This document shows positions 6,552 through 62,819 of a stretch of 64,000 nucleotides of DNA, piece by piece. Location of the stretch: sequence record NC_023719.1; one strand, given 5' to 3'. The notes beneath the pieces are model-generated. The model was given only the letters and a program-made list of their open reading frames with translations, did no database searches and was not told the DNA's origin. Both the position numbers and the translations under genes were made by a program. Position 1 is the stretch's first letter, and every line of letters starts with the position of its first letter.

Positions 6552-7056
6552 TTGAATTTCAATGCAGTTGACCACGTTTGCAAGGTGGGTAAACGTAATT
6601 TAGTAGGGCTATATCGGTATCGCTGCTGGATATAGGGAAAAATTACGTGGATAAGGACTAGTATCCTCGTGGAGTTCAGCGATAGAACAACTTCCCATGT
6701 TTGAAATTCAAAATGTCCCTAAGTTGCTAGGGGTTATTGAAAAGCAACCGGGTTAGAGAGGCTCATATAAGATACGGTATGAGTTGTAAGAGCTAAGAAG
6801 CCATTGTAAATTCTCTAATCAGGAGTGATGTTCACATGATAGGGCTTAGTGAACTAAATAAAATATGCTTAGTATCAATAAATTTAAGAGGTGAGAACAA
6901 TGTAGTACTTAACTGTGCTATTACCCCTATTTTCACAATTTTTAACGGGGGATTCCTTTTCAAGTTTGTTCTTAATAAACTTTGAGCCGATCGATGGTTA
7001 AAAGACGGAAAATTGTAAATAATTAAGCTGTCCTTCTGCGGAAGGACTAATTTTTT
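6552..7056 (+). ncRNA. Candidate large structured (ornate) non-coding RNA
   Basis: ~550-nt gap with no long ORF, visibly more G/C-rich than other intergenic gaps; many nested helices (6552-6562/6701-6711, 6593-6601/6640-6648, 6751-6760/6811-6820 and others), two loop pairings, ending in an intrinsic terminator. Confidence 0.75.
7030..7056 (+). terminator. Intrinsic terminator closing the candidate ncRNA
   Basis: GTCCTTC-TGCG-GAAGGAC followed by TAATTTTTT. Confidence 0.8.
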
Positions 7057-7084
7057 GTCAAAATTATGTTCTAGGAGTGTAGAT

Positions 7085-8068
7085 ATGAATAACGTATTTG
7101 ATTATGAAGATATTCAATTGGTACCAGCAAAGTGTATAGTTGAGAGCCGTTCCGAGTGTGATACATCTATTAGTTTAGGGAATCGAAAATTTAAATTACC
7201 AGTAGTTCCATCTAATATGCAAACGATTATTGATGAGAAAATAGCTGCTTATTTAGCAGAAAATGGCTATTTCTATGTAATGCATAGATTTGAACCCGAG
7301 ACTAGACTTGATTTTATTAAAGATATGCAAACTCGCAACTTATATGCTTCTATTAGTGTTGGTGTAAAAGAAGAAGAGTATCAATTTATTAATCAATTAG
7401 CTGATGAAAAACTTGTTCCAGAATATATCACTATTGATATAGCTCACGGACATTCTAATGCTGTTATTAAAATGATTCAACATATAAAGAAGATGTTACC
7501 AAATAGTTTTGTTATTGCTGGTAATGTTGGTACACCTGAAGCTGTTCGTGAACTTGAAAATGCAGGCGCAGATGCTACAAAAGTTGGTATTGGCCCAGGT
7601 AAAGTATGTATTACTAAAATCAAAACTGGTTTTGGTACTGGCGGCTGGCAGTTAGCTGCATTGCGTTGGTGTTCAAAAGTAGCTACTAAACCAATAATTG
7701 CTGATGGTGGTATTCGTACTAACGGTGATATTGCTAAATCTGTACGTTTTGGCGCTTCAATGGTTATGATTGGTTCGCTATTTGCGGGTCACGAGGAATC
7801 ACCAGGTGAGACGATAGAAAAAAATGGTAAATTATATAAAGAGTATTTTGGATCCGCTTCTGAATATCAAAAGGGTGAAAAGAAGAACGTTGAAGGAAAG
7901 AAGATACATGTAGAATGTAAAGGGAGTTTGAAAGATACGTTGATTGAAATGGAACAAGATCTTCAATCTTCAATTTCTTATGCTGGTGGTAAAGATTTAT
8001 TAGCAATTAGAAATGTAGATTATGTCGTTGTTAAGAACTCCATTTTCAATGGAGATAAAAGTTATTAG
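7085..8068 (+). CDS. guaC: GMP reductase
   Basis: [36 protein letters not shown] and [16 protein letters not shown] as in Bacillus-type GuaC; ATG 7085 behind AGGAG. Confidence 0.95.
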
Positions 8069-8079
8069 GAGGTTATTAA

Positions 8080-8334
8080 ATGCTTTCAGATACAAAACAA
8101 ATGTATAGTTTTATCAAGATGAGAGGTTTCAAACAATCAAAAGATGTACTAGGTACTTATTTTGATAAAGGTGATCACAAGCTAACAATTAATAAACAAG
8201 CTGGTTGGTTTATTTGTTATTATAATAGAAAATCTGGAATGTCATGGCAGTTAATAGCTAAAAGCCAAACTCTTGATAATTTCTCTTCAGCTTTAGGTTG
8301 GGTTGTTCAAGAAATACAGAAAAATCAACTATAA
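8080..8334 (+). CDS. Hypothetical protein
   Basis: GGAGG RBS, 84 aa. Confidence 0.65.
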   Translation: MLSDTKQMYSFIKMRGFKQSKDVLGTYFDKGDHKLTINKQAGWFICYYNRKSGMSWQLIAKSQTLDNFSSALGWVVQEIQKNQL

Positions 8335-8349
8335 GAAAGGCGGTTTAGA

Positions 8350-8829
8350 ATGATAACAGCTTTTAGAAGTGATTTAACTAAATTGCAAAACGTAGATTAT
8401 ATAGTGAACGCTGCGAATGCAAAAGGTCCCATGGATTCTGGAATAGCTGGGGCAATAAGAATAAATGGTGGAACTGAAATACAAGATGCTGCAATGTTAA
8501 TATGTTCTAAATTAAATTATCAACCTGGAGATATTTATGTTACACATGCTGGTAGATTATCATTTAAGAAAATAATTCACCTTGTAACAATGGAAAACCC
8601 AGGTGGAGTAACTTCATATGATATTGTTAGAAAATGCCTTCAGAATTTAATTTTATACTGTAAAGTTAATAATATTAAGAAAATCGCTTTACCAGCTTTA
8701 GGTACAGGTGTAGGTGGTTTAGATATTGATAAAATAGCAGGAATTTTTAAAGAAATATTGGGTAGTGTAGAAGAAATAGAGTTTTTAGTTGTAGATATTG
8801 ATCCAATGTTTATTTACAATTTTAAATGA
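8350..8829 (+). CDS. Macro domain protein (ADP-ribose binding/hydrolase)
   Basis: DYIVNAAN, GIAGAI-x3-GG, IIHLVT and IALPALGTGVGG macrodomain motifs. Confidence 0.9.
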   Translation: MITAFRSDLTKLQNVDYIVNAANAKGPMDSGIAGAIRINGGTEIQDAAMLICSKLNYQPGDIYVTHAGRLSFKKIIHLVTMENPGGVTSYDIVRKCLQNLILYCKVNNIKKIALPALGTGVGGLDIDKIAGIFKEILGSVEEIEFLVVDIDPMFIYNFK

Positions 8830-8863
8830 AATAAGTTGTTTTAAGAAAGATTATTTGATGTAT

Positions 8864-8900
8864 ATAGGATATAGCTAGTTTAGCTATATCCTATTTTTTT
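8864..8900 (+). terminator. Intrinsic terminator
   Basis: 14-bp perfect stem ATAGGATATAGCTA/TAGCTATATCCTAT plus T-run. Confidence 0.8.
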
Positions 8901-8928
8901 GATTTTAATATTGAAGAGGGTGTTTATA

Positions 8929-9849
8929 TTGAAAAGATTAAAGAGACAATCAAAAGTATTTAGACAATCAAGATTGAAAAAGAAATCTTGGGATGCAGTG
9001 AGTTTAAAACACTATACTAGTACCCAACATTTTATCGAGATAATGAACGAAGGCCAAATAACTCCTGGTGGTTACAATGGGAATATCTCAGGTGGTGGAC
9101 ATGTTAAGTATTTATCGATGAGTGATGGCAGCAATACTACAAAAAAAATGTCACCATCAGAAATAGATAGATTATTCTCTAGTGATTTATGGGAAATTGA
9201 TAAAGATTTATTGAACTATGTGAATGAAACGAAAGATACTGATGAATGGTACTCAAAACAAATTAATGTAAATATTATTCAACCTAGTCATGATCAAAAT
9301 GGTGTTTATTTAACTAATAGGTCTGATGAAAATGATTACGGAAAAGAAGCTGTTAATAATGGTTTAAGTGACGATTATCCTAACTTTGAAATAACTTTAG
9401 AATTTAATGTTCAAACTGATGCATTAGGTCCTGACTTAGATGATGGTAAAATAGATAAAGAGAGCGAAACTCCACTTTGGAGACAAACTATTGATTCTAT
9501 AGGTCAGTGTGTACATTATGGTCCTATTTCTATTGACTCAATTAGCCAAGTGATAATAAAGGATTATGGTCAAATAAATGGATATGAAATGAGGTTTTCA
9601 GATAGAGATAATTTTTTAAGTTGGGCTAGTGAATTTATAAGTTTTGAACAAGGTTTAAGTGCAGCAGATGCATATTCGCAAATTCAAAAAATGTATGAAG
9701 AATTTGACAATTATTATGAAGAAGAAGACTTTGATGATGAAAATATTAATATCAACGACGATGATGATTTTGATGATGATGATATTGATTTTGACATAGA
9801 TGATTTCGAATTCCCTGAAGATGAATTAAATGATGATGATTTAAAGTAG
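8929..9849 (+). CDS. Putative ADP-ribosyltransferase-fold protein, paralogue A, with basic leader and Asp-rich tail
   Basis: LKHYTS..EGQITPGG, GVYLT, ITLEFNV..LGPD, HYGPISIDSI resemble the H-x-T / VYL[ST] / GPI pattern of Tpt1/KptA-Arr-like ART folds; TTG start behind GAGGGTG. Confidence 0.55.
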   Translation: MKRLKRQSKVFRQSRLKKKSWDAVSLKHYTSTQHFIEIMNEGQITPGGYNGNISGGGHVKYLSMSDGSNTTKKMSPSEIDRLFSSDLWEIDKDLLNYVNETKDTDEWYSKQINVNIIQPSHDQNGVYLTNRSDENDYGKEAVNNGLSDDYPNFEITLEFNVQTDALGPDLDDGKIDKESETPLWRQTIDSIGQCVHYGPISIDSISQVIIKDYGQINGYEMRFSDRDNFLSWASEFISFEQGLSAADAYSQIQKMYEEFDNYYEEEDFDDENININDDDDFDDDDIDFDIDDFEFPEDELNDDDLK

Positions 9850-16685: not shown

Positions 16686-17816
16686 ATGGCTGGTACTAAA
16701 ATTGGTTTTCTTTGTTTTGGTGAAGGCGGTTCAAATGTTGGAGAGTATGCTGCTCAAAAAGGTTTTCCAGTAGTTGCAGTCAATAGCGCTAAAATAGATT
16801 TAGAAAAAATAAAAATAATTCCAAAAGATTGTAGGATTCACTTGGATGGCTGGGAAGGTGCTGGCAGAAATAGAGATGTAGGTAGGGAAGCAGTTCTATC
16901 TCACGCAGAAACAATCTTTGAAAAGATAAAAGATAAATTTAAAGATTGTGACATGGTGTTTTCAGTAGCTTCAACAGCTGGCGGTACAGGTTCAGGATCT
17001 TTAGCGGTTGGTATCGAACTTCTTTCAGAAATAAATAGTAAAGTTGGAGCGATAACTATTTTGCCAGACAAAAATGAAAGCCCAAAAGCTCATATGAATT
17101 CTTTAGAATGTTTCTCTGAGTTAAGCCAATACGAACAATTGAATAGTACGTTTATCATTGATAATGAAAAAGCAAATCAAGTATTTAAAGGCAAAGACAA
17201 AATTCAAATTTATCAATTATCTAATAATCAATTGATTGACAATTTAGCGGAAATATGCTCACTAACCGATCAACACGCTTTAGTTTCAAATTTTGATAAA
17301 AATGATCTACTTGAAATACTAAGTGAACGAGGAACCACTATAATTAGCAAGATAACAATACCAACAGAAGAATTGAAAGATGAAGTAGAAATTGTTAATG
17401 CAATTAGAAAATCTTGGGAAACTGTTTGTTCTTCTGACATTGGTGATGGGCAAATAGTAAAAGCTGGTGTATTTGGTAAAATACCAAAAGAATTAACTTC
17501 AATGATAGATTCAAGAAAAGTTTTTGAAGAAATTGGAATGCCATATGATATAATTGAATCTTACTATTTGAATACTGAACACTCTAATCATTGTATTTTC
17601 TATACTATTCTTTCTGGATTATCCTACCCAATTGAAAGATTGAAACAAATAGAAAGTGAAGTACAGATGATTGAACAAGAATTGATTAATAGAGTAGAAG
17701 TTTCTAGGACCCAAGTTTTTTCAACTAATAATTGGAACTCTAAGTTTAAACGACCTGAACAAAAACAAAATGTTAAAACATCGTTAAGTGATAGATTAAC
17801 AAGATTTACTAAGTAA
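16686..17816 (+). CDS. Tubulin/FtsZ-family GTPase (TubZ/PhuZ-like)
   Basis: FGEGGSNVG, GAGRNRDVG, AGGTGSG tubulin signature, IIDNEK and NFDKND T7-loop-like motif. Confidence 0.9.
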   Translation: MAGTKIGFLCFGEGGSNVGEYAAQKGFPVVAVNSAKIDLEKIKIIPKDCRIHLDGWEGAGRNRDVGREAVLSHAETIFEKIKDKFKDCDMVFSVASTAGGTGSGSLAVGIELLSEINSKVGAITILPDKNESPKAHMNSLECFSELSQYEQLNSTFIIDNEKANQVFKGKDKIQIYQLSNNQLIDNLAEICSLTDQHALVSNFDKNDLLEILSERGTTIISKITIPTEELKDEVEIVNAIRKSWETVCSSDIGDGQIVKAGVFGKIPKELTSMIDSRKVFEEIGMPYDIIESYYLNTEHSNHCIFYTILSGLSYPIERLKQIESEVQMIEQELINRVEVSRTQVFSTNNWNSKFKRPEQKQNVKTSLSDRLTRFTK

Positions 17817-17821
17817 TATTT

Positions 17822-17852
17822 AACAAGAGAGAATATTCTCTCTTGTTTTTTT
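17822..17852 (+). terminator. Intrinsic terminator
   Basis: AACAAGAGAGAA/TTCTCTCTTGTT stem plus T-run. Confidence 0.8.
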
Positions 17853-17879
17853 TATTGTTAGAATAAGGTTGGTGATACT

Positions 17880-18977
17880 TTGAAAAAAATCTACTTTTTT
17901 AAAGATGGGCATAAAGATATGCATAATTACTTGGGTAAAAAAGGCGCAAACCTATGCGAAATGTATAATATGGATTTGCCAGTACCAAATGGATTTATTA
18001 TACCCACATACTTAAATAGAGAAACAAAAGAATTAAGAAGAGAAATAGAAAATGCAATTGAAAAACTTGGAGGTAGGTTAGGAGAAGATTTATTTGTTTC
18101 AGTACGTTCAAGTGCTCCCACCTCAATGCCAGGAATGATGGATAGTTTTTTGAATATAAGTAATTATGATGACTTATTTAATTCTATAGAGCTAGTGGTT
18201 AATTCATGGAACAATAAAAGAGCTGTTACTTATAGGGAAAATAATGGTATCTCTGAAGGAGTGGGTACAGCTATAGTAATACAAAAAATGATCTTTGGAA
18301 ATAAAGACGAGAATTCTGGTTCTGGAGTTGTTTTTAGCAGAAATCCTAATAATGGAGAAGAAGGACTAGTCGGGGAGATATTGTTTAATTCTTTTGGTGA
18401 GGAATTAGTGCTTGGTAAAAAGACACCACTTTCAATTACTATATTAAAAGAAAAAATGCCCAACGTTTATACATTATTGGAAAATATATCAAAAAAGCTT
18501 GAAACTCATTTTTCATCTATGCAAGAAATAGAATTCACTATTGAAGAAAAAGAGTTATATGTATTGCAGACAAGAGAAGTAAAAAAGAAAAACAAAATAG
18601 TTAAGTTTAAAATAAAAGAAAAACAAAAAAATCCAATAACAATAGGTATAGCATCTTCTTATGGAGCGGCTACAGGGTTAGTTGTTTTTGATTCAAAGAA
18701 AGCAGTAGAATTAAAATCAAAAGGTAAAAACGTTATTTTAGTAAGACTTGAGACTAGTCCCGATGACATTGAGGGAATAATCGCTTGCGATGGCATTGTA
18801 ACTTTACAGGGTGGAGCAACTTCTCATGCAGCTGTTGTTGCTAGAAGTATGAATAAGCCATGTATTTGTGGCTGTCAATACTTAGATGTAAATGAATTAG
18901 AATGGATAACAATTGAAGGTCAAACTGGTAAAGTTTTTCTCGGTGAGTACGATTTAGAAATAGATGATAGTCTATAA
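17880..18977 (+). CDS. Truncated pyruvate phosphate dikinase-like protein (ATP-grasp plus phospho-His domain only)
   Basis: LGKKGANL..PVPNGF, VSVRSSAPTSMPGMMD, EFTIE..LQTR and GGATSHAAVVAR; ends without the C-terminal PEP/pyruvate barrel. Confidence 0.85.
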   Translation: MKKIYFFKDGHKDMHNYLGKKGANLCEMYNMDLPVPNGFIIPTYLNRETKELRREIENAIEKLGGRLGEDLFVSVRSSAPTSMPGMMDSFLNISNYDDLFNSIELVVNSWNNKRAVTYRENNGISEGVGTAIVIQKMIFGNKDENSGSGVVFSRNPNNGEEGLVGEILFNSFGEELVLGKKTPLSITILKEKMPNVYTLLENISKKLETHFSSMQEIEFTIEEKELYVLQTREVKKKNKIVKFKIKEKQKNPITIGIASSYGAATGLVVFDSKKAVELKSKGKNVILVRLETSPDDIEGIIACDGIVTLQGGATSHAAVVARSMNKPCICGCQYLDVNELEWITIEGQTGKVFLGEYDLEIDDSL

Positions 18978-19093
18978 TATATCATTCTTATATTATTTTT
19001 TACTGATAATTTAATTTAAAATATATTTCTATTTTAATTAATATAAATATATAGTAAATATATTAAGAATAAGAGAAAGAGAGGTGTTTTAAA

Positions 19094-19177
19094 ATGGGTT
19101 GCAAATGTAATGATTGTTGTTGTGGGTGCGAATGCAAAGATTGTGAAAATGGATGTTGTGATAAAAGTGAAGAATAA
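19094..19177 (+). CDS. Metallothionein-like 27-aa peptide
   Basis: MGCKCNDCCCGCECKDCENGCCDKSEE* (10 Cys); GAGGTG RBS at 19081; terminator directly downstream; below the ORF-track cutoff. Confidence 0.7.
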   Translation: MGCKCNDCCCGCECKDCENGCCDKSEE

Positions 19178-19187
19178 ATAATAAATG

Positions 19188-19219
19188 AGTCGATTAGTTA
19201 AAATCTAATCGACTTTTAT
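19188..19219 (+). terminator. Intrinsic terminator
   Basis: AGTCGATTAG/CTAATCGACT stem plus T-run. Confidence 0.75.
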
Positions 19220-19245
19220 TTATTATTTAAACATGAGGTGGTAAC

Positions 19246-19662
19246 TTGACTAGAAATATGATAGTAGAAATAGAAGAGTTTATAGATTCGTTAATAATAA
19301 TGCACAATATTATTAATGAAAACAACATAAGTTTTGAGTTAAAAAAATCAGATAATGGTGTATTAACTTTATTTTCTATTAGTGGAAATTTAATTATAAA
19401 TTCAATTAATGTAATAAAATTAGTTACAGTAACCGCAGAAGAAGATTTTTCTTGCACAGCGATGTGTGAAGTAAGTAGATTCAGTCCATTTTATAGAAAG
19501 TTACTAGACTATAAGAGCTCTCACGCTGGTTATATGAATTTAGATTTGGATAATTATCATAAAAAGTTTGAGTATAACTTTAGAGATTTAAAAAATTTTA
19601 ATGATTTCTTTATGAAAATGATATGGGACGTTTTTATCTCTAACTTTATTTCTTCAAAATAA
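19246..19662 (+). CDS. Hypothetical protein
   Basis: GAGGTGG RBS, 138 aa. Confidence 0.6.
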   Translation: MTRNMIVEIEEFIDSLIIMHNIINENNISFELKKSDNGVLTLFSISGNLIINSINVIKLVTVTAEEDFSCTAMCEVSRFSPFYRKLLDYKSSHAGYMNLDLDNYHKKFEYNFRDLKNFNDFFMKMIWDVFISNFISSK

Positions 19663-19747
19663 ACTTTTTAAAAACCATATAATTGATATATAATATATTG
19701 CAACTCTTATTTTAGATTTGAATTTTAAATAATAGGAGTTGTTTTTT

Positions 19748-20587
19748 TTGAAGAGATTAAAGAAAAAAGCTTGGGAAACCATTGAATTATATCATCACAC
19801 TAGTTCGCAGTTTTTTATGCAAGTGATGGAAGAAGGGCAACTTACTTCTGGTGGATACAATGGCAACATATCTGGAGGAGGTCACACTAGTATTTTCGAT
19901 GTATTTAGCGATGAAGACCCTTCATCTAATATATATTACCCTTTAATAATTTTAGATGAAATGATAAAAGTACCTAGTGATGATAAAAAAGTTACTAAAA
20001 CATTAACTGATTTAGTTAATAAAATGAAAGAAGAAAACCCTGATTGGCAATCTGAAGAAATAGAAGTAAGTGAGACTAAGCCTAGTGGAAACGAAATAGG
20101 CGTTTACTTAAGTAGTGATAAATACAATTCTGTTGGTTATGCTGAAGATGCAGTTTCTAAAGGCGATACAAGTAAATTAAACTTTGAAGTTACATTAGCT
20201 ATTAAGGTTCAAACTGATGCTTTAAGTCCGGATTACGATGATCTAGTTAGCCTTGAGTTAGATATTGATGATAGAAGTTCTGTTCCACTATGGAAACAAT
20301 CACTTAATCAAGTTGAACAGTGTGTTCATAATGGACCTATTGATTCTGAAAGCATAGTTAGTGTTACTTTTCATAGTTTAGAAAATGCTTATAATGATTC
20401 TGATGGGAAGTTTAATGATGAAGATGAATTTACTGAATTTGTAAGTCAATATATTAAAGAAGATGAGCCTATGTCTACAATGGAAGCGTTAAGTCAATTA
20501 GCTTTGATGGATTCAGAATATGCAAATACAGAAAGTTTAGTGATGTCTTCAAAGAAAATAAAGAGATTAAAAAAGTTTAATAAATAA
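19748..20587 (+). CDS. Putative ADP-ribosyltransferase-fold protein, paralogue B
   Basis: LYHHTSS..EGQLTSGGYNGNISGGGH, GVYLSS..VGYAEDAV, VQTDALSPD, HNGPIDSESI; clear paralogue of 8929..9849. Confidence 0.55.
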   Translation: MKRLKKKAWETIELYHHTSSQFFMQVMEEGQLTSGGYNGNISGGGHTSIFDVFSDEDPSSNIYYPLIILDEMIKVPSDDKKVTKTLTDLVNKMKEENPDWQSEEIEVSETKPSGNEIGVYLSSDKYNSVGYAEDAVSKGDTSKLNFEVTLAIKVQTDALSPDYDDLVSLELDIDDRSSVPLWKQSLNQVEQCVHNGPIDSESIVSVTFHSLENAYNDSDGKFNDEDEFTEFVSQYIKEDEPMSTMEALSQLALMDSEYANTESLVMSSKKIKRLKKFNK

Positions 20588-60296: not shown

Positions 60297-62819
60297 ATGG
60301 CAAATACGGAAATAAAACATACCGTAAAAAAGGGTGATACCCTTTGGGATATAGCTAAGAAATATCTAGGTGATGGTACAAAATGGAAAGAAATTTACAA
60401 TTTAAATAAGAGTCAAATTAAAGATCCTCATTGGATATACCCTGGTCAAGTATTTATCATTAAAAAAGGTGAAACCGTTGTACCTGTCGCTAAGCCTCCA
60501 GCACCTAAACCAGAGCCAGCTCCTGTGCAGTCTTCAAAAGTTGATCCATTAAAGTTATCTTATGAAAATAGATATAGTAGAACAAAAGAACTAGATAGTA
60601 CACAACATGATCCAAGTCAAATGAAAATTGTAGACTTCAAACAAGATTATACTGTTGTTGTACGTAAAAAATTATATTACGCTATAAATCAAGATGATAA
60701 CGAAAAATATATAAAGATGTTTCAACTTAATAATTTTATGCAAATTAGAACATCAAACTCTGTTTACGGTAAAGGTTCAGCTAGTATAACAATAAAAGGC
60801 GGAGAGAGAGTTGTAGTAGCTGATAAAGATGTTATTAAAGAAAAAACTGGTGGATGGAAATTTGAAACATTTTTAGCAAGTTGGAATAGTATTATGCACG
60901 AAACATCTGGTAAGGAAGAAAATGGAATAGAATATAATAACACAATGAAAGTTAGAGAACATAAATATGGATGGGCTTATGCTGAAAAATGTGATATTGA
61001 ACCTATGGATGAAGTTTACATTTTTTCTAAAAGTAGAAAGCTAAAAAATAAAGATGGTTCTTATCCTTTTAAACAAATATTCTTTGGCTACATTACAGCA
61101 GTAACAAAATCTTATACTGCTGGACAAACTGGTCCAATGATAAGTATACAAGTTGATGATCACTTAAAACTTTTAGATATATCTAGGGTTGCTAATAGAC
61201 CTGCGCTAGATATGACGACTGTTGTCCCAGGGTCTAGACTTGATGGTCATGGTTTCTGGGTATTAGAAGATGATTATAGATACAATGGTATTAATCCTGA
61301 TACTTTAGAACCATTAAGTTCGGGTGCAAGTTTCGTGTTAACGAATTCATTTGCTGGTCTAGAGGCACATAAGATAATTAAACGTTTATGCATCGAGGCT
61401 GGAATACCTCTTAACAAATTAACTCAAAGAATAGAACAAACTGAACGAGTACCGTTTGCTGTTCAGATAAGGGAAAATTTTGGCGACATATTTAGTGGAG
61501 ACTTTGAAAAACGATTAACCTATTGCGAAAAAGCAGCTAATGTCTTAAATTTTGAATTTTTTGCTGATGAAGAAGGCAACATAGTATTTAAAATACCAAC
61601 ATGGAATATAGGCGTAAATAGAAAACCGCTAAACAATTGCGGTCAAGATGTTACTTATTTATATGATGTAGGAGGAGCTCTACATAGAGAACCTCAAAAG
61701 AAAGAATATGAAACAAAAGAAGTAACTAAAACTAAAACTGTGCAGAAAACAACAAAACAAGCGATAACACATACTGTGAAAAAAGGAGATACTCTTTGGG
61801 ATATAGCCGCTAAATACTTAGGTAAACCAACTCTTTGGCCTCAAATTTACAATTTAAATAAGAGTCAAATTAAAGATCCTCATTGGATATATCCAGGGCA
61901 AGTATTTACAATTCAAAAAGAAGTAACTCAATCTGTACAAGAACAATATGTTGAAAAAATTAAAGTTGAAAAAAAATCTGAACCAGTCGATAATTCTAAT
62001 AATCCTTCTGTTTCTAAGATGACTGATAAGCTGATACCAGTAGCGTACCCATGGGAGATTATTTCTTTCACTTTTACCGATACAGATAAAGAAGTGTATA
62101 CTGCTGCAACTGTAACGGCAGATACTCCACTTATTAGTTTAGCAAACGAAGGTGTAGTAATGGCGGTTACTAGAGCAGTTCAAGATCCTGGCTTAATTGC
62201 AAAATTCGGCGTTAGAGTAGCTCCACCCGTAACGACTCCATTAGTGGGAGGATATAAGGGCGCAGAAATATATGCTAATATGCAAATTATAAGGTCATTA
62301 GCTAATAGATATACTGGAACTCTACAGATGGTAGAAGAATCTTCAATAAGGGTGGGAGATCCAATAAGATTCCATATTTATGATGAAATACCATTTGCAG
62401 AACAAATGGCTAGAGATAAGAAAAATGCTAATAGTGAAAAAAATGCGCAAGCTGTATTTTATGTTGATCAAATTGATAGATCAATTTCAATTAATGGTGT
62501 ATCAACAATGTCATTATCGTTAAAAGCGGGAAGAATGATGGGTATGCCATCTATATATGATAAATGTACAGAACTTTATAGACCATTCTTTGAAAAGAGT
62601 GCAGATTTACCGCAAACGCCTGAAGATCCAAAAGTTTCTCAAGCTGGTGGAACTTATAAAGTTAAAAAAGGAGATTCTTTATGGAAGATAGCTGTAACTG
62701 TTTATGGAAATGGCGCTAAATGGAATGTAATTTATGAAGCGAACAGGAAAGATATGAAACGAGGTCCTTTAACTCAACCCGATAGGGTTTATGAAGGTCA
62801 AGTCTTAAAAATACCGTAA
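60297..62819 (+). CDS. Baseplate hub protein with three LysM domains
   Basis: HTVKKGDTLWDIA twice and YKVKKGDSLWKIA; hub-like FFADEEGNIVFK and IRVGDPI..FYVDQIDRS. Confidence 0.8.
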   Translation: MANTEIKHTVKKGDTLWDIAKKYLGDGTKWKEIYNLNKSQIKDPHWIYPGQVFIIKKGETVVPVAKPPAPKPEPAPVQSSKVDPLKLSYENRYSRTKELDSTQHDPSQMKIVDFKQDYTVVVRKKLYYAINQDDNEKYIKMFQLNNFMQIRTSNSVYGKGSASITIKGGERVVVADKDVIKEKTGGWKFETFLASWNSIMHETSGKEENGIEYNNTMKVREHKYGWAYAEKCDIEPMDEVYIFSKSRKLKNKDGSYPFKQIFFGYITAVTKSYTAGQTGPMISIQVDDHLKLLDISRVANRPALDMTTVVPGSRLDGHGFWVLEDDYRYNGINPDTLEPLSSGASFVLTNSFAGLEAHKIIKRLCIEAGIPLNKLTQRIEQTERVPFAVQIRENFGDIFSGDFEKRLTYCEKAANVLNFEFFADEEGNIVFKIPTWNIGVNRKPLNNCGQDVTYLYDVGGALHREPQKKEYETKEVTKTKTVQKTTKQAITHTVKKGDTLWDIAAKYLGKPTLWPQIYNLNKSQIKDPHWIYPGQVFTIQKEVTQSVQEQYVEKIKVEKKSEPVDNSNNPSVSKMTDKLIPVAYPWEIISFTFTDTDKEVYTAATVTADTPLISLANEGVVMAVTRAVQDPGLIAKFGVRVAPPVTTPLVGGYKGAEIYANMQIIRSLANRYTGTLQMVEESSIRVGDPIRFHIYDEIPFAEQMARDKKNANSEKNAQAVFYVDQIDRSISINGVSTMSLSLKAGRMMGMPSIYDKCTELYRPFFEKSADLPQTPEDPKVSQAGGTYKVKKGDSLWKIAVTVYGNGAKWNVIYEANRKDMKRGPLTQPDRVYEGQVLKIP
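60391..60439 (+). repeat. 49-bp exact direct repeat, copy 1 (LysM1)
   Basis: AAATTTACAATTTAAATAAGAGTCAAATTAAAGATCCTCATTGGATATA, also at 61843-61891. Confidence 0.9.
61843..61891 (+). repeat. 49-bp exact direct repeat, copy 2 (LysM2)
   Basis: Identical to 60391-60439. Confidence 0.9.

Follow-up and report, generated by a model that had tools for sequence, protein, structure and literature searches.

What can a pyruvate phosphate dikinase (PPDK) do without its PEP/pyruvate-binding barrel? The question is raised by gp139 of Bacillus phage G, a mini-PPDK of 365 amino acids encoded in the window analysed here, a stretch of 64,000 nucleotides that represents positions 62001–126000 of the 497,513-bp phage genome. 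The coding sequence (17880–18977 of the window, + strand; JN638751/NC_023719, 79880–80977) begins with TTG and ends with TAA, and its product is labelled ‘pyruvate phosphate dikinase’ in GenBank and ‘kinase’ in RefSeq. A purine-rich, Shine-Dalgarno-like stretch, AAGGTTGGTGA (17865–17875, + strand), read directly 5 nt upstream of the TTG codon, is likely the ribosome-binding site. The N-terminus is complete because the homologues open with the same MK.IYFF, and at the other end the frame does not continue into the 270 bp of AT-rich spacer that follow. A terminator-like hairpin with an 11-bp stem and a T run (17822–17857, + strand) lies between the preceding tubulin gene and gp139. A comparable hairpin is found 33–35 nt upstream of the mini-PPDK start codon in two relatives (L006 and L011), so that all three contexts scanned, phage G among them, have one. 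Downstream, a second terminator-like hairpin beyond a Cys-rich micro-ORF (19187–19225, + strand) likely terminates the transcript on which gp139 lies. The host of phage G has since been re-assigned to Lysinibacillus.

Only two Pfam families match gp139, PPDK_N (PF01326, 1.8e-46) and PEP-utilizers (PF00391, 1.5e-21). They correspond to an ATP-grasp nucleotide-binding domain (residues 1–236; 17880–18587) and, after a short Lys-rich linker (about residues 237–256; 18588–18647), to a phospho-histidine swivel domain of the PEP-utilizers mobile type that includes a short tail (residues 257–365; 18648–18977), all on the + strand. The closest solved structure is the PPDK of C. symbiosum (1dik, E 1e-78), to which gp139 aligns in three blocks: residues 2–97 with 3–113, residues 96–236 with 201–341 and residues 256–341 with 395–480 of the cellular enzyme. 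Compared with the latter, gp139 lacks a helical sub-domain of about 88 residues in the nucleotide-binding domain (C. symbiosum 113–200), most of the helical linker and the PEP/pyruvate TIM barrel in its entirety. All residues regarded as catalytically essential in C. symbiosum PPDK have aligned counterparts: K22, R92, G101 and M103 of C. symbiosum correspond to K21, R76, G85 and M87 of gp139, D321, E323, Q335 and R337 to E216, E218, Q230 and R232 (the replacement of D321 by glutamate being conservative), and T453 and H455 to T314 and H316. The codon of His316, the counterpart of the catalytic His455, is CAT at 18825–18827 (+ strand), and the residue is part of the motif GGATSHAAVVAR (residues 311–322), of which T314-S315-H316 are invariant across 50 aligned sequences. 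By these alignments, the catalytic apparatus for ATP-dependent self-phosphorylation is intact. The Pfam matches and the residue alignment confirm the first-pass annotation in its description of a 365-residue protein with intact nucleotide-binding motifs and a clean stop, and its background, a PPDK of about 870–900 aa and a rifampin phosphotransferase that reuses both domains, agrees with the PDB matches.

The same annotation had seen no barrel nearby, and this can be extended to the whole phage: a search with PF02896 (PEP-utilizers_C barrel), positive in 14 of 14 control genomes, found nothing at E ≤ 10 across the 497,513 bp of its genome, which also means that no split C-terminal gene is present that would restore PPDK activity. 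The genome holds a single PPDK_N locus and a single PEP-utilizers locus. With 361.7 bits gp139 stays below the cut-off of 843.45 of the pyruvate phosphate dikinase model TIGR01828. On its own, gp139 cannot make or use PEP.

An AlphaFold2 model of gp139, built on a 50-sequence alignment, reached a mean pLDDT of 93.3 and a pTM of 0.88. In Foldseek comparisons it matched C. symbiosum PPDK with TM scores of 0.92 (1kbl), 0.91 (1jde) and 0.88 (1dik), crystal forms in which the His domain packs on the nucleotide domain, but only with 0.5–0.6 the barrel-facing conformers (maize 1vbg, 2r82 and the Flaveria structures); PEP synthase, rifampin phosphotransferase and HpeI were weaker matches. The predicted fold thus places His316 at the ATP site and, since it overlays the conformers with the histidine at that site, would represent an autophosphorylation-competent unit.

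A word-based protein search retrieved six more mini-PPDKs of 351–376 aa, all from Logan metagenome assemblies, which are 55–64% identical to gp139 over 97–98% of its length and lie on contigs of G-like phage DNA from uncultured phages. The seven proteins, hereafter the G clade, are 51–65% identical to each other, have common ends (the C-terminus lies 0–11 residues past the His domain in 7/7) and have both internal deletions in common. The truncation is therefore conserved in the closest relatives, none of which is a full-length PPDK. Among 119 invariant columns are the ATP-site residues and the GG.TSHAA motif, with the exception of R232, which is a lysine in one member; His316 is kept in all seven. 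These data bear directly on the view that gp139 is the decaying, non-functional remnant of a captured host PPDK. It is true that gp139 has shrunk to under half its ancestral length and that a terminator-like hairpin stands just upstream. However, seven divergent lineages have kept the ends, the deletions and, apart from one R-to-K change, the catalytic residues, no internal stops occur in the mini-PPDK genes and the fold model is confident. Moreover, a near-identical phage G strain in a soil metagenome differs in the gene at just two positions (codons 143 and 277), both synonymous third-position changes (n = 2). The remnant explanation is effectively refuted, and conservation and predicted fold together argue that gp139 is a genuine, selected, minimal ATP-grasp and swivel-histidine enzyme.

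Relaxation is seen at other positions. We screened for deviations from residues common to at least 90% of cellular PPDKs and give them in C. symbiosum numbering. In the G clade D321 is replaced by E, R286 and D318 are variable, R341 has become K, R or I, and G339 is V or I; the Pro of the ASPGA motif is changed to Y or F and the Thr of NPSTGE to N, K or D. In the AQGED loop the Q shared by nearly all other PPDKs is an F in gp139 itself. None of the deviations of the clade removes a residue that, to our knowledge, is essential. The relaxed arginines, together with a halved linker, may reflect the loss of the barrel-docking cycle.

Where the G clade came from was addressed with an alignment of 123 PPDK-like sequences, in which we compared the insert region (between gp139 residues 90 and 110) and the linker (between residues 232 and 262). 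Long-type PPDKs have an insert region of 101–108 residues and a linker of 59–67, followed by a barrel. A group of 15 short-type PPDKs, with source labels Dehalococcoidia, Chloroflexi, Methylarchaceae and Desulfobacteraceae, has an insert region of 19 residues, a linker of 61–67 and, when complete, a barrel; these proteins are normally barrel-fused, as in an 813-aa example from Chloroflexi (L012). The G clade combines an insert region of 19 residues with a linker of only 28–30 and ends 0–11 residues beyond the His domain, whereas the linker comprises 59–67 residues in every PPDK-like sequence examined outside the clade. Short-type PPDKs are 42–49% identical to gp139 over the shared domains and resemble it in the deleted helical sub-domain with the identical 19-residue spacing. 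In a FastTree phylogeny (LG+gamma, columns limited to those of gp139) the G clade is monophyletic (support 1.0) and the short-type clade (0.995) is its sister (support of the union 0.90). Other phage PPDK-like proteins and the VadK-like actinobacterial protein L107 fall outside this union. The top-scoring cellular match to gp139, a full-length PPDK from Chloroflexi, is of the short type as well. Since the best cellular matches, among 185,579 species represented by one genome each, are only 38–45% identical to gp139, the G clade seems to be confined to phages in the collections searched. Tree and spacings suggest that its probable source was a captured short-type PPDK, which later lost the barrel and half of the linker.

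The first-pass annotation had treated a PPDK without barrel as unprecedented. This does not hold, as barrel-less PPDK derivatives are known in Actinobacteria and recur in other phages. VadK (Rv1127c) of M. tuberculosis, described in a 2026 paper, is a PPDK without the barrel that autophosphorylates on His422 with ATP and Mg, is required for growth on propionate or cholesterol and for virulence, pulls down methylcitrate synthase and dehydratase and is found in several actinobacterial genera (PMC13400623). Like gp139 it consists of ATP-binding and phospho-His domains without a PEP/pyruvate barrel and has its histidine in a TSH motif. By analogy the same chemistry, autophosphorylation with ATP and Mg, would be expected for the phage protein, which is about 125 aa shorter. 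For a phage there is no ground to expect the interaction with methylcitrate enzymes. Homology and the VadK precedent lend good support to the proposal of the first-pass annotation that gp139 may be a stand-alone generator of phosphohistidine. The two truncations nevertheless appear to be convergent and of independent origin, because L107 (a 578-aa open frame from G086) falls outside the G clade and, unlike gp139, has about 60 residues of the helical insert and a full linker of 63 residues. The model NF004531, to which gp139 scores 298.5 bits (cut-off 456), is also passed by full-length actinobacterial PPDKs and is thus not VadK-specific, according to a survey of 101 genomes that includes three unpublished ones (G004, G051 and G091), none of which is the source of L107.

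In phages we found three barrel-less architectures, the G clade of 351–376 aa, a two-domain protein of 541 aa on a 425-kb IMG/VR contig (L099/L100) and a group of 560–740 aa from Vibrio, Rhizobium, Rhodobacter and Stenotrophomonas phages and from IMG/VR contigs. The last group shares with gp139 the two N-terminal domains, but is of the long type with a helical insert, forms a separate clade and continues after the His domain with a C-terminal domain of 100–216 aa without assigned identity, which gp139 lacks. Its genes adjoin one or two DSP-type phosphatases and a conserved protein of about 330 aa (Vibrio, Rhizobium and Rhodobacter phages and the IMG/VR contig L092). The PHROG 18609 profile, to which the 600–740-aa proteins of this group belong, matches gp139 with 2.7e-164, while a scan of viral contigs with the single gp139 sequence found nothing and PADLOC gave no match. 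The ‘PPDK’ genes of phages figure in the literature as putative auxiliary metabolic genes only, with no experimental work (PMC12038007, PMC7326821), and two broad overviews of jumbo phages make no mention of them. More distant are rifampin phosphotransferase, PEP synthase and other water dikinases, which have an ATP-grasp and a swivelling phospho-His domain as gp139 has (TM ≈ 0.5–0.58), yet differ in domain order and in an obligatory substrate domain. No substrate domain intervenes in gp139, which scored far below the cut-offs, with 72.6 bits for the rifampin phosphotransferase model NF041857 (cut-off 999) and 140 bits for another water-dikinase NCBIfam model (cut-off 740). Canonical PPDK (EC 2.7.9.1) has the TIM barrel and both linker helices, all of which are absent from gp139.

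We therefore consider it probable, though by no means settled, that gp139 is a functional, self-contained, PPDK-derived phosphohistidine (di)kinase that charges itself on His316 and acts in trans. In the proposed cycle the ATP-grasp domain would bind Mg-ATP and the β-phosphoryl group would pass to His316 on the attached swivel domain. AMP and PPi would be released if phosphate accepts the γ-phosphate, as in PPDK, or AMP and Pi if water does so, as in PEP synthase or rifampin phosphotransferase. Barrel-less constructs of C. symbiosum PPDK made in the Dunaway-Mariano laboratory reportedly still perform the ATP/Pi partial reactions. Because neither gp139 nor the phage has an acceptor domain, the charged His domain must then act in trans. 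Either the phosphoryl group could be passed on to another molecule, or the domain could, as proposed for VadK, bind and regulate an enzyme of the host or the phage depending on its phosphorylation. Autophosphorylation, the fate of the γ-phosphate and action in trans are what we infer here. The acceptors named by the first-pass annotation, a host protein, a small molecule or a nucleotide precursor, are purely conjectural, and the analogy with VadK points to phospho-dependent binding and regulation as much as to transfer. Several observations count against the reading of gp139 as a self-charging kinase that acts in trans. No acceptor, phosphatase or partner gene turned up, the half-length linker could restrict the swivel towards an external acceptor, R286, R341, G339 and D318 are relaxed, an F is present in the AQGED loop, a hairpin stands upstream of the gene and none of the RNA runs searched contained it.

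The neighbourhood of the gene was inspected for a possible acceptor. The order of a TubR-like gene of 98 aa, tubulin and mini-PPDK is found in phage G and in the contigs P0005, P0006 and P0007 (four of five informative contexts); in the P0004 contig gp140, gp142 and gp144 recur on the 3′ side and in the P0008 contig the neighbours differ. An operon of tubulin and mini-PPDK was rejected: the hairpin lies between them in 3/3 contexts and the whole region is syntenic anyway. We do not infer a functional tie to tubulin because the T-tailed hairpin separates the two genes. The product of the following gene, gp140, was likewise discarded as a partner. It has no family and no recognisable fold (its Atlas model is of low confidence), a homologue follows the mini-PPDK in only one relative (27% identity), the P0005 and L007 contexts have none among the genes called 3′ of the mini-PPDK, and the overlapping ORF that follows it in L007 is no relative of gp140. 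Beyond general synteny no gene is consistently coupled to the mini-PPDK. Phage G was also searched for the parts that accompany such enzymes elsewhere: it has no counterpart of the C-terminal domain of the PPDK-like protein of the Vibrio phage, no DSP phosphatase (PF22784, PF00782), no PHPT1/Ocnus-type phosphohistidine phosphatase and no receiver domain, and for the module partner of about 330 aa of other phages it gives only a chance match of 13 bits.

Several other explanations were weighed. If no macromolecular acceptor existed at all, gp139 could work at the level of nucleotides, either by ping-pong half-reactions or as an ATP-to-AMP converter by hydrolysis of the phospho-enzyme, forming AMP and NTP or dNTP from ATP and NMP or dNMP, recycling AMP and PPi or altering the energy charge of the host; a variant would be a direct pyrophosphoryl exchange from ATP to NMP that feeds nucleotide pools. 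Both retained domains are those which catalyse the reversible nucleotide partial reactions in the established PPDK mechanism, so short a linker would be in keeping with a His domain confined to the ATP site, and gp139 is located downstream of a gp120–135 block with GMP reductase, thymidylate synthase, DHFR, a MazG-like protein and thymidine kinase. In addition, ATP is reported to accumulate in a vadK deletion mutant (PMC13400623). However, the residues lining the ATP site are those of PPDK and give no sign of relaxed nucleotide specificity, ordinary kinases could do such work, and the tubulin unit and hairpins separate the nucleotide genes from gp139, which makes this explanation unlikely. We are somewhat more doubtful that gp139 is the kinase module of a multi-subunit dikinase for a small molecule or polymer, with the substrate part on a separate phage protein, for which rifampin phosphotransferase, glucan water dikinase, phenylphosphate synthase and HpeHI provide models. 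The fold search did retrieve rifampin phosphotransferase and HpeI, other phages replace the barrel by the 100–216-aa C-terminal domain beside DSP phosphatases, and one relative has the gp140 homologue next to the gene. Yet the C-terminal domain, the phosphatases and the 330-aa partner are without counterpart in phage G, gp140 has no recognisable fold and is missing after the mini-PPDK in P0005 and L007, and general synteny is all that couples any gene to the mini-PPDK.

The charged His domain might, instead, borrow a barrel from the host and dock on that of PPDK, PEP synthase or Enzyme I. Such a hybrid would interconvert ATP, Pi and pyruvate with AMP, PPi and PEP and thereby shift the PEP and ATP pools of the host during infection. 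The sister relationship to the short-type PPDKs implies that the His domain once served a barrel, and PF02896 is present in three Bacillota/Actinomycetota genomes tested in addition to all 14 controls. Against this, each host barrel is covalently joined to a His domain of its own, gp139 is missing the C-terminal linker helices by which this domain is positioned on the barrel, and we know of no documented natural trans system of this kind. Cellular ‘split PPDKs’ from metagenomes (P0013, P0022 and P0028) were rejected as a precedent for it, being artefacts or pseudogenes; one frame is shifted by +1 in the linker, another meets an in-frame stop within the His domain and the third is broken within the barrel, none of which is a natural split. 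We regard complementation of a host barrel as distinctly improbable. PTS Enzyme I, which naturally phosphorylates HPr, has a His domain homologous to that of PPDK, and for this reason an HPr homologue in phage G deserves mention, gp197 (genome positions 135707–135961, outside the window; PF00381, 52.5 bits). Its best alignment is to Crh, and it has Thr where His15 and Asn where Ser46 would be expected. As a phospho-acceptor gp197 is ruled out for the canonical route, the acceptor His15 being missing, and by its sequence it looks more like a mimic than an acceptor. One may speculate, with very little confidence, that gp139 is an ATP-driven surrogate of Enzyme I that phosphorylates host HPr, PRD-type regulators or another His/Asp acceptor while gp197 blocks the normal partners; giant phages would then take over the carbon-status signalling of their hosts.

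Phosphohistidine signalling is poorly mapped beyond two-component systems and the PTS, and VadK has only recently revealed a PPDK that was stripped of its barrel and turned into a regulator. The phage G clade took this evolutionary step independently, in viruses, and went further, down to 365 aa, without the helical sub-domain and with half the linker. What we rate as new is this more minimal, phage-borne variant, barrel-less PPDK derivatives as such being already known. Taken with the 541-aa and 600–740-aa forms, it points to barrel-less dikinases as a class of phage enzymes that recurs but has been left unstudied. We know of no smaller natural ATP-grasp and swivel-histidine unit than gp139, which may serve as a compact model for the swivel mechanism and for phosphohistidine chemistry and is a candidate tool by which the phage could rewire the energy or carbon metabolism of its host. 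Note that the ESM Atlas contains many bacterial clusters with PF01326 and PF00391 only, with representatives of 373–539 aa, to which fragments may contribute.

The mini-PPDK gene of phage G (gp139) is preceded by a T-tailed, terminator-like hairpin at window 17822-17857, and the same type of element lies 5' of the mini-PPDK start in two uncultured G-like relatives, at 2043-2071 in L011 and at 9937-9978 in L006. The hairpin sequences of these three diverged phages are unlike one another, and the distance from hairpin to start codon is 33-35 nt in all of them. As the spacer left after the hairpin is so short, there is no space for a sigma-70-type promoter directly 5' of the gene. Either read-through or a signal specific to the phage is probably required for mini-PPDK to be expressed.

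The spacer downstream of gp139 carries a Cys-rich micro-ORF of 27 codons on the + strand (window 19095-19178), which begins MGCKCNDCCCGC..., has a strong ribosome-binding site and is followed by a hairpin (19187-19215). The equivalent spacer of the relative L010 contains no ORF of at least 20 aa and thus lacks a counterpart. Further downstream lies gp141 (282 aa, + strand, window 19739-20587), which belongs to PHROG 13493 and has no Pfam match. At its position the contig P0005, another relative, features two called genes close to gp141 in size (279 and 277 aa). In the most divergent relative, L007, a 162-aa ORF (6977-7465, + strand) overlaps the mini-PPDK stop codon in an ATGA; this overlap suggests that the two genes are translationally coupled. 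No homologue of the 162-aa ORF is present in phage G.

A second, independent case of the barrel-less two-domain architecture was found on another jumbo-phage contig: a long-type PPDK-like protein of 541 aa, encoded at 7980-9605 of loci L099/L100 (two IMG/VR contigs, 425 kb and 107 kb long), among whose neighbours the sole Pfam match is a dephospho-CoA kinase. In addition, a conserved phage module (L001 4995-9161, L002 4998-10209, L003 4303-9547 and L092 7072-12451) combines a PPDK-like protein of 640-734 aa with one or two DSP/PTP phosphatases and a hypothetical protein of ~330 aa; the Vibrio phage copy has an additional CsrA-like gene. The PPDK-like gene of this module is regarded in the literature as a metabolic PPDK. 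Pfam did not find a barrel domain in its product, which ends in an uncharacterised C-terminal domain of ~180-215 aa.

Two short-type PPDK genes on metagenome contigs (L008 11200-11340 and L009 2720-2960) were each called as two genes. We rejected them as natural split PPDKs because one reading frame is broken by a +1 frameshift and the other by an in-frame stop within the His domain; the breaks are likely assembly errors or pseudogenes. The NCBIfam model NF004531 (PRK05878; 534 positions, 'pyruvate, phosphate dikinase') was run on 101 Actinomycetota genomes, three of them unpublished (G004, G051, G091). Both ordinary actinobacterial PPDKs of ~900 aa and truncated forms passed, so the model is unusable for recognising proteins of the VadK type.

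Outside the window, phage G encodes an HPr/Crh-like protein, gp197 (genome 135707-135961, + strand; L115:1489-1743; PF00381, 52.5 bits). Both phosphorylation sites are gone, since the His15 position is Thr and the Ser46 position Asn. It is possible that gp197 mimics the HPr/Crh of the host.

A phage G strain in a soil metagenome (run X1) showed two differences, both synonymous, over about 1.2 kb of window 17700-19300. Phage G itself or a virus very closely related to it thus occurs in nature beyond the original isolate.
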